Source: Pavona decussata
Taxonomy: Eukaryota
DNA length: 63,882 bases
Reading direction: 5' to 3'
NCBI GenBank assembly: GCA_977016875.1
Contig: CDRNST010000104.1
Coordinates: 2,356,001-2,419,882, forward strand
The notes below the pieces were generated by a model. It searched no databases, was not told the DNA's origin, and saw only the letters and a program-made list of their open reading frames with translations. A program made the translations under genes and the position numbers. Positions 56,801 to 58,506 of the stretch are shown here, one piece after another; the stretch's first letter is position 1; every line of letters begins with the position of its first letter.

Positions 56801-58506
56801 TGAATGCAGTTTTGTTGTAAACGATCTTTCTTTACAGATGGTACCAAGGAAGCAGCTTTTACCACGGCAATGTTGTCAGCCGCACTTGCATATAACATAG
56901 CAAACGCCTGTACAGCAAAAGATGTAACAGAATGTAACTGCGAAGGAATGAAACGACCTGTGCGTGGACATTCCTGGCAATGGAAAGGCTGCAGTGTTAA
57001 CGTTCGCTTTGGCTGCCACACGGCTGAACGATTTATGCTGAGTGGGAGAAGTAACAACAGCCAAATCAATATTATGACCAGGCACAATGTTAGAGTTGGA
57101 CTGGAGGTAAGTAGCGGAGTTTTCGGTGTACATTTCCATTGTTTTATTTAATCATTTGAACAATTTGACAAGATGAACAATTGAAATATAACAAGAAACT
57201 GCTTACGACTTGTGATACAAATCCTGAAACCATTTTCATACAGTTGTTTAAAACTATATAAACTAATAAAAAAATTAGTTTACTTAGAGATGGTATACAC
57301 TTGACAGTAAAAAATAACTGACAAACGTAAGTCCTCGCTAAATTAACTTTAAAATACATTACAATTCAAATAAAGATACTCATAGATTTAAACTCACTTT
57401 TCAAACTTTGGGTTAAAATTTCAAATCATTCAATTGCTGTCGTTTTATGTCTTTGCTGCTTTTAAGCGGTTTGTGAAGAGAAATATGTATTTTTTGCCAC
57501 CTCATCGGTTTTCCGACTGGTGTCACTGAACTTAAAGGGGTAGTATCATGGGGTTTATGGTATCTTTCGTTAAAAATGATGAAATAAGACCTTTAATCAG
57601 CTGCCAAATAATTCTAGAATGACGAGAGGACAAAAATCAACTCAATTCTTCAAAGGAACAACTCGTGATCTGTTCTAGCGCATTTTGGAAACAAAAATGC
57701 GAGAACTTGAAAAACATTAGCCTAACATTTTTCAAGTTTCAATCCATACCGACCTACTCTGTCTCTGGCCAAGAGACACTAATCGACAGTTTCATTGCAC
57801 TGGGGGATAATTTATAACAAACTTGACAATTATTTGTTTTGTTTCTACCTGACAGACAAACATTTTTGGGTTTTGAAATGACAGCAAATTTGCGTGATAC
57901 TTCCCCTTTAACTAACAAAGAAATTAAACTTGTTAATTAATGCATTGGGAATGTATACTCTTGTATGTGTAACAACATGGTAAAGCAATGCAGTAGGCCT
58001 AAAGGCGTTTCTTGTCTTTTTATCAGGTATTGAAGGAAAATAGAGTGATCAAGTGCACAGTGGGAAAAACAGGAAAGGTAAAGGGGTGCCAGCTGACTTT
58101 ACCACCGCTGCAAAAAATCAGCCGAATCATTAAATCAAAATATAACAGAGCTATCAAGGTCGTCGCTACAAAACGCGAAAAAAAGCGGTCGTTTTACCTA
58201 CGGACCAGTGGGCGGAATCGAAATCGATCAAATTTTAAACGACCAAAGAAGTCGGAATTAGTGTTTTTGTCCCAGTCCCCGACGTACTGCTACCGGCAAG
58301 ACGAATACCGCATTCCAGGAACACGTGGTCGCAAGTGCCAGAGAAACACCCACAAAGAAGATGATTGCTTTTTTATGTGTTGTGGTCGCGGATACAACAG
58401 AGATGTATCTTTTAAGAAGAGATTCTGTGACTGCAGCAAGGGTCTTAATGAGCGATGCAGCTGCAGAGAATGTACTGATGTTATTATTGAGAACACGTGT
58501 CTGTAA
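50856..58506 (+). CDS. WNT7-like: Divergent Wnt-family ligand (Wnt7-like), 341 aa; exons 50856-50908, 51839-52062, 56838-57106, 58027-58506
   Basis: Signal peptide MIKLNFTALILFVILSLS, then CEKTPGLSDGQRKLC, ECEREFKWNRWNC, GTKEAAF, ACT..ECNC, WQWKGCS, MTRHN, ELVFLSQSPTYC, GTRGRKC, MCCGRGYN and terminal TC. Intron phases 2/1/0; 1026 nt in frame. Residues CxKxPGL, WNCxxLGE, EAAFT, LxEN, TLP and KYNxA resemble Wnt7 from memory. Exon 1 and the exon 2 acceptor (NAGNAG 51839/51842) are less certain. Confidence 0.9.
52199..53028. mobile_element. Tc1/mariner-type (pogo-like) MITE in Wnt intron 2
   Basis: ta-cagtcaaacctgtatataacgg ... ccgttatatacaggtttgactg-ta; several internal ctgtatataacggtcac repeats. 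Confidence 0.88.
55540..56100 (-). mobile_element. Possible degenerate Penelope-like GIY-YIG endonuclease relic, with a ~120-bp tandem duplication (55855-55974 / 55976-56095)
   Basis: Minus strand reads EKPKRVVYKIPCNCGG, then in a shifted frame FQTRKKKH, similar to VVYxIPCxCGxxYIGET...TRxKEH. The duplication is directly visible. Confidence 0.45.
57536..57907. mobile_element. TTAA-flanked MITE in Wnt intron 3
   Basis: ttaa-aggggtagtatcatg ... cgtgatacttcccct-ttaa. Confidence 0.65.

Follow-up and report, generated by a model that had tools for sequence, protein, structure and literature searches.

To what extent can a Wnt ligand be rebuilt at the very site that carries its lipid and still be retained as a gene? 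Palmitoleate is central to both Wntless export and Frizzled binding, and a 2023 review states that every Wnt analysed, with the exception of Drosophila WntD, bears this Porcupine-added modification (PMC10112924). The acylated Ser resides at the tip of a disulfide-stabilised hairpin, namely, hairpin 2 or the "thumb" (bioRxiv 10.1101/2021.07.19.452875; PMC12612157). The question is raised in acute form by a Wnt gene of the stony coral Pavona decussata, located on the forward strand of a stretch of 63,882 nucleotides (GenBank assembly GCA_977016875.1, contig CDRNST010000104.1, positions 2,356,001 to 2,419,882) that is referred to here, in its entirety, as the window. This gene belongs to a conserved, expressed, Scleractinia-wide orphan subfamily of Wnts that has lost the canonical lipidation motif and is probably lipid-free.

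The departure from the Wnt norm is concentrated in exon 4. Following the acceptor AG at 58025-58026, this exon reads VLKENRVIK-C-TVGKTGKVKG-C-Q-LTLPPLQ, and the segment CTVGKTGKVKGCQ, encoded at 58054-58092 on the forward strand with its first Cys at 58054, occupies the position of CKCHGxSGSCxxKTCW in Wnts. The outer Cys pair of the thumb is retained with a spacing of 10 residues, versus 13 in the canonical Wnts of this genome and those of other animals, while neither inner Cys remains, nor the His of CxCHG, nor the Trp that follows the last Cys, and Ser is absent. An earlier note on this DNA had described just such a loss, with a hairpin three residues shorter, the inner Cys pair missing and the outer pair kept, neither His nor Trp nor Ser present, and a Thr in GKTG at about the acyl position. 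The open reading frame and the alignments agree on each of these points; the span given there, 58054-58089, stops at the second Cys, and the full segment runs to 58092. In the HMMER alignment, the Thr of GKTG falls opposite the Ser that is acylated in human WNT7A, and the Lys that precedes the last Cys falls opposite the consensus Lys. MAFFT places the three-residue gap elsewhere, so that residue-by-residue equivalence within the thumb is alignment-dependent. The residue preceding the putative acceptor Thr is Lys, as compared to a hydrophobic residue in canonical Wnts. The Porcupine consensus, as reportedly defined by Rios-Esteves and colleagues in 2014, is CxCHGxSxxCxxKxC, of which the coral thumb is missing three of eight positions. 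Neither the window gene nor any ortholog carries this canonical consensus in hairpin 2, the second Cys, the third Cys and the His all being gone and Thr standing for Ser in the window. No CxCHG or GxSGSC-like motif was found in the six frames of the 63.9-kb window.

This rebuilt thumb is a shared feature of a coral family. A phmmer search with exon 4 against 1.84 billion representatives returned five proteins at 63-75% identity, with the next best at no more than 37%; the orthologs are 57-84% identical and possess the same 10-residue, single-disulfide loop. A search with full-length P0003, followed by a look-up of clusters, identified members in Porites harrisoni, Desmophyllum pertusum, Orbicella faveolata (for example, XP_020629388.1), Pocillopora meandrina, Oculina patagonica, five species of Acropora (A. 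cervicornis, A. muricata, A. digitifera, A. millepora, for example XP_029197899.2, and A. palmata) and two of Montipora (M. capricornis and M. foliosa), genera that span both major scleractinian clades. In the databases these orthologs bear automatic Wnt-7a/7b(-like) labels or none at all. Among sea anemones, canonical Wnt7 proteins match best, at 31-35% identity, and the exons of the window are 76, 84 and 81% identical to ortholog P0151. All 75 family sequences inspected have C-x-[VM]-G-x-x-G-x-x-K-x-C in common. The residue at the hairpin tip is Ser or Thr in 10 of the 13 distinct loop variants, Arg in Acropora and Montipora, and Ala in one Oculina-like variant. The Porites harrisoni ortholog has the same four-exon structure, and a six-frame scan of its 24.5-kb locus yielded no canonical thumb motif.

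The thumb is not the only element of the family to have been rebuilt. The index finger (hairpin 3) of canonical Wnts presents a hydrophobic tip, KF.W-CC, to site 2 of the Frizzled cysteine-rich domain (CRD). The window has SKGLNER-C at this location and the orthologs have KKGPNEP or KASVDEP, such that the family pattern is C.C-(7-8 polar residues)-C.C..C as compared to the canonical C.CKF.WCC.V.C..C. A new Cys, conserved family-wide, sits two residues before the next canonical Cys of the finger. Thus, 20 of the 24 columns of the canonical Cys framework are retained, those lost being the two inner Cys of the thumb and the two of WCC, and together with the new residue the family has 21 conserved Cys; one additional Cys occurs in exon 3 of the window and of P0153. 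Separately, Montipora is without one further Cys (C to R in CKVRT). The C-terminal half of the family carries a net charge of +19 to +30, which places it among the most basic Wnts compared.

Despite these replacements, the overall architecture is that of a Wnt. An AlphaFold2 model of P0151, the full-length ortholog nearest to the window protein, computed from a 50-sequence alignment, attained a mean predicted local distance difference test score (pLDDT) of 88.9 and a predicted TM-score (pTM) of 0.83, and exhibits the two-domain Wnt fold, with a helical N-terminal domain bearing hairpins 1 and 2 and a C-terminal hairpin 3. Its thumb is a hairpin in which strands 189-194 and 200-206 flank the loop G195-K-T197-G-A199, at pLDDT above 90, and its long finger hairpin (305-319 and 327-340) is closed by a polar loop (320-326). 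The Thr occupies the middle of the five-residue thumb loop, that is, the tip, which is the site of the acylated Ser in canonical Wnts. Foldseek matched the model to WNT3 in the Frizzled-8 CRD complex (6ahy) with TM-scores of 0.77/0.85, and to WNT7A (8tzo), XWnt8 and WNT3A at a probability of 1.00. The fold is in this sense established for the family.

Does such a protein still receive palmitoleate? The tip residue that would have to provide the acceptor hydroxyl is Thr in the window and Thr, Ser, Arg or Ala in the orthologs. Judged from the sequences, the family is probably unable to carry the lipid. Acylation is argued against because the CxCHG context and the inner disulfide are missing, the loop is shorter, and tip variants with Arg (Acropora and Montipora) or Ala (the Oculina-like variant) exist, which have no tip hydroxyl and yet belong to genes that stay under purifying selection. 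Both hairpin disulfides reportedly matter for Porcupine substrates, according to Lee and colleagues in 2019 and Miranda and colleagues in 2014.

Several observations weigh against a lipid-free protein of this kind. The Ser or Thr at most hairpin tips, the interchange of the two within G-x-[ST]-G and the retention of the consensus Lys would fit continued O-acylation, and the retained hydroxyl would fit a structural turn preference just as well. Thr itself is probably no obstacle in this coral, because the genome also holds eight Wnt8-type paralogs of canonical appearance in which the acyl position is Thr (CKCHGVTGSC), an indication that the Porcupine of corals may use this residue. Rios-Esteves and colleagues, again in 2014, reportedly found that Thr can replace Ser209 of Wnt3a as the acyl acceptor. 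Furthermore, the number of conserved Cys in the family is odd, and the structural model is that of the ortholog P0151 (76-84% identical per exon) instead of the window protein itself.

The strongest competing explanation builds on the same observations. It holds that Porcupine still palmitoleoylates the tip Thr, or Ser in some corals, and that Wntless still exports the product, the loop having been merely slimmed and the Acroporidae, with their Arg, having lost the lipid secondarily. The HMMER match of the Thr to the acyl-Ser of WNT7A, the retained outer disulfide and the Thr of the eight paralogs are all compatible with it. However, it must accommodate the missing second Cys, His and third Cys, a hairpin three residues shorter, a Lys directly before the acceptor, and lineages that lack a tip hydroxyl under purifying selection. 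We therefore consider continued acylation unlikely, though it is the one rival of real weight.

A second explanation, under which relaxed constraint erased the motif from a duplicate that is decaying or without function, fares far worse. Nei-Gojobori estimates, with counts summed over exons, put the ratio of nonsynonymous to synonymous substitution rates (dN/dS) at 0.11-0.16 when the window is compared with the coding sequences of five orthologs, and at 0.09-0.20 when these five are compared with one another; taken separately, the exons give 0.08-0.29. All 25 pairwise comparisons fall at 0.08-0.20, values that are rough given the saturation of dS in the deepest pairs, though nowhere near 1. 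Each of the five orthologs examined in this way resides on an intron-free transcript contig, and no frame disruptions were found. Decay would be in keeping with a very long stem branch (1.77), a last exon whose wnt profile score is lower than that of any other intact one in the genome, an odd number of conserved Cys, and the presence of other paralogs with degenerate thumbs, one of which, L032, is apparently truncated. Against these stand an intact frame with intact splice sites, spliced mRNA in two studies, mRNA contigs for the five orthologs, the low dN/dS, and a loop architecture conserved across both major scleractinian clades, which leave decay highly improbable. A pseudogene is likewise ruled out by dN/dS, splicing and conservation. 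The proposal in the earlier note of remodelling rather than decay is thus well supported, because the gene is spliced and expressed, its orthologs share the loop across the Scleractinia, and dN/dS remains low; conservation and selection are established for the family.

The gene model itself is secure. It comprises four intact exons with GT..AG at every intron, all six splice dinucleotides being intact (Table 1), and the claims of an uninterrupted frame, a signal-peptide exon and intact splice sites all hold in the window sequence. Exons were analysed singly, and the full-length ortholog P0151 was used for folding and for searches of the PDB. The N-terminus encoded by exon 1 resembles those of the orthologs, and the 5′ untranslated region of an ortholog mRNA (L033) aligns at 50584-50778, directly upstream of the predicted start codon; the junction of exons 1 and 2 is a prediction. 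The exon 2 border at 52062 coincides with the end of ortholog mRNA alignment blocks, and more generally the blocks formed on the window by ortholog mRNAs from other corals end at the predicted exon borders. A split codon, G/AT, supplies the Asp of the conserved DGTKEAAF. Exons 3 and 4 score 75.2 and 99.4 bits against the Pfam wnt profile (PF00110; cut-off, 20.3), and exon 2 was also matched in the wnt-profile search of the genome. The last exon has a net charge of +26 over 159 amino acids and terminates with TAA at 58504-58506.

Splicing is directly documented. Two studies of the same organism each yielded an RNA contig, X5 record 14 (1473 nt) and X9 record 20 (1137 nt), that matches 56835-57104 with 0-1 differences and joins this segment straight to 58025 onward. 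The 920-base intron is thus excised where predicted, and both contigs extend in the 5′ direction by lengths compatible with exons 2 and 1. The thumb codons are unchanged in the X5 mRNA, because its sole differences from the window in exon 4 lie at 58179 (synonymous) and 58369 (Phe to Ile). At these two sites, the second of which lies in DDC-F-FMCC, all four runs read G and A against A and T in the window; as such, the individual that gave rise to the window differs from the common allele. The whole-genome wnt-profile search detected no wnt-domain exons on the contig other than those of this gene; since no further copy exists in the genome, a genomic retrocopy cannot account for the spliced contigs. 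In a second species, a DNA contig (X13) runs colinear with 54591-58650 of the window at about 95% identity. Introns 2 and 3 contain stretches (54292-54689 and about 57529-57911) of extreme depth with many loose ends in all four runs, including those of the second species, which represent high-copy interspersed repeats.

That the locus is misassembled, or that a canonical motif lies in some other exon used by the true transcript, is scarcely credible: two N gaps (47974-48101 and 61585-61818) and the intronic repeats leave some room for such an artefact, but the canonical motif is absent from the frames of the window and from the Porites locus, the contig holds a single wnt gene, RNA contigs link exon 3 to exon 4 with an unaltered thumb, the second-species contig is colinear, and independent assemblies of more than 10 taxa give the same loop. 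An alternative exon with CKCHGxSGSC, which the earlier note had named, in transcripts, as a refuting observation, was excluded by the six-frame scans of the window and the Porites locus together with the whole-genome wnt-profile scan.

Table 1. Features of the Wnt gene and a neighbouring gene, in window coordinates
Feature	Position	Strand	Description
Exon 1, coding part	50856..50908	+	Start codon; hydrophobic signal peptide MIKLNFTALILFVILSL; donor AAG/GTGAGT; phase-2 split codon AG/C (Ser)
Exon 2, N-terminal Wnt region	51839..52062	+	WC..PGLS..QRKLC and CEREFKWNRWNC; wnt profile positions 2-55
Exon 3, Wnt helical core	56838..57106	+	GTKEAAF...WQWKGCS...HNVRVGLE; Pfam wnt 8.4e-21, profile 56-154
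Exon 4 (last)	58027..58506	+	Thumb, basic linker and C-terminal domain; Pfam wnt 3.6e-28, profile 162-304
Rebuilt hairpin 2 (thumb)	58054..58092	+	C-TVGKTGKVKG-C-Q; one disulfide pair kept, 10-residue loop, Thr at predicted tip
Rebuilt hairpin 3 (index finger) tip	58426..58473	+	CDCSKGLNERCSCREC; replaces CxCKFHWCCxVxCxxC; WCC pair lost, one new Cys
Rhodopsin-type G protein-coupled receptor, intronless	40755-41723	-	7tm_1, 2.2e-33

The receptor gene upstream of the Wnt gene is 68% identical to a gene in the same position and orientation in Porites harrisoni, and synteny is thus conserved; further 7tm_1 genes flank the Porites Wnt locus. Downstream, after the second N gap, two overlapping RVT_1 open reading frames at 61831-63763 on the forward strand constitute a frameshifted retroelement.

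From which Wnts did the family arise? We constructed a tree from the columns of the last exon, with the thumb columns excluded, encompassing 25 paralogs of the genome, 11 family rows and 8 named Wnt7, Wnt16 and other proteins. The family forms one clade (100/100) with a stem of 1.77 substitutions per site and short inner branches, and groups weakly (21/79) with paralog L010, a placement that derives from a last-exon tree with few named subfamilies. The canonical Wnt7 clade, consisting of L013 and the Nematostella and Actinia Wnt7 proteins, is separate from it. However, constraining the family to join Wnt7 costs 1.7 log-likelihood units, with a p value of 0.41 in the approximately unbiased (AU) test, and the union is not rejected.

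Pairwise comparison leans toward Wnt7. In the PDB search with P0151, WNT7A (2.7e-51) ranks ahead of WNT3A (2e-43), WNT8 (about 1e-30) and WntD (1.7e-7), and the Wnt7 subfamily, represented by human WNT7A (PDB 8TZO) and Nematostella Wnt-7b (35% identity), provides the best matches overall. Wnt7 and the coral family share IPGT/VPGT ahead of GR.C, and their last exons begin in a similar way. In contrast, canonical Wnt7 proteins keep CKCHGPSGSC and KFHWCC, both of which the coral family lacks, and identity amounts to 31-35%. Of the description "Wnt7-like" in the earlier note, the pairwise resemblance and the shared IPGT/VPGT therefore stand, whereas membership of the Wnt7 clade finds no confirmation in the tree. 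A Wnt7 affinity of the family is weakly supported, and possible rather than established, because the two are separate in the tree while their union is unrejected by the AU test.

Taken together, these findings lead us to an account of the family that, as a whole and including lipid-free secretion and altered receptor use, we hold at a probability of roughly 0.6. A canonical Wnt, possibly of the Wnt7 group, would have undergone a burst of divergence, after which the new form was fixed and purifying selection maintained it. Signal peptide and Wnt fold would have been retained, the thumb would have become a shorter, Lys-rich loop with one disulfide, and the hydrophobic tip of hairpin 3 (KFHW-CC) would have been exchanged for a polar, Pro-containing loop. 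We infer that the protein would leave the cell by the general secretory route, neither palmitoleoylated nor reliant on the step at Wntless that depends on the lipid, as is the case for Drosophila WntD. It may then act through another binding mode or another receptor, or modulate Wnt signalling in soluble form, because both contacts with the Frizzled CRD are altered, the lipid at site 1 and the fingertip at site 2. Since the C-terminal half is in addition very basic, a non-canonical binding mode or modulator role would be the likeliest; this basic half could anchor the protein to matrix or heparan sulfate in place of the lipid. The broader proposition, that stony corals have conserved, from before the split of Complexa and Robusta, a dedicated ligand with a Wnt fold that needs no lipid, with both Frizzled-CRD sites replaced and with a role at a non-canonical receptor or as a soluble, matrix-bound modulator, strikes us as evenly poised.

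Rebuilding of the thumb is not confined to this family. Three thumb-degenerate Wnt8-type paralogs of the same genome, L025, L030 and L031, have intact last exons and rebuilt hairpins (CRCYDSNCDRQTCY, CRCYHGIDSDCAKKECF and CREATFTFSRVYFTCW), and thumb rebuilding has also occurred in the unrelated database proteins P0006 and P0059. The three paralogs belong to the Wnt8-type expansion (a 100/99 clade), keep the KF.WCC finger, and have arrived at other loop solutions than the coral family. L025 and L030 reside on contig C145, and L031 on contig C274 together with L032, a Wnt8-type paralog with a degenerate hairpin that looks truncated and may be a pseudogene. The eight paralogs with Thr at the acyl position, L015-L022, form tandem clusters on contigs C93, C274 and C436 and read CKCHG[VI]TGSC. 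P0006 is a 692-residue tandem double Wnt whose thumb, CRCHGFKGC, has no Ser and is one residue shorter, and P0059, with C-KPTKNPKHRE-C-W, presents another single-disulfide loop of 10 residues.

Literature searches for loss of the lipid site in coral Wnts returned no description of the family, and a coral genome paper that lists 20 Wnt genes is silent on lipid-site loss (PMC11269664). The automatic "Wnt-7a/7b-like" names conceal what is a distinct family. If the lipid-free account holds, this family would be a natural experiment in what a Wnt fold does without its lipid, with respect to secretion route, range and receptor choice. The differences in tip residue between lineages, Thr or Ser in some and Arg or Ala in others, would serve as built-in comparative controls, and the account is directly testable with sequences on hand from well-studied corals.

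The closest parallel among known systems is Drosophila WntD (Wnt inhibitor of Dorsal; PDB 4KRR), which, like the coral protein, is a natural Wnt without the conserved acyl-acceptor Ser, and which carries no lipid and needs neither Porcupine nor Wntless for its secretion (PMC2427328). The two are not orthologs by the evidence at hand: the coral family lies outside the Wnt8-type clade of its genome, and its match to WntD (1.7e-7) is far inferior to that to WNT7A (2.7e-51), in agreement with the suggestion of the earlier note that it arose independently. The manner of the loss also differs. According to a figure legend, WntD retains the conserved cysteines around the site (PMC2427328), whereas the coral family has lost the inner disulfide, and with a loop three residues shorter and a replaced fingertip its rebuild is the more radical of the two. 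The coral form is, moreover, conserved over a whole order. If the account is true, stony corals would thus possess a second, independently evolved and far more widely conserved counterpart of Drosophila WntD.

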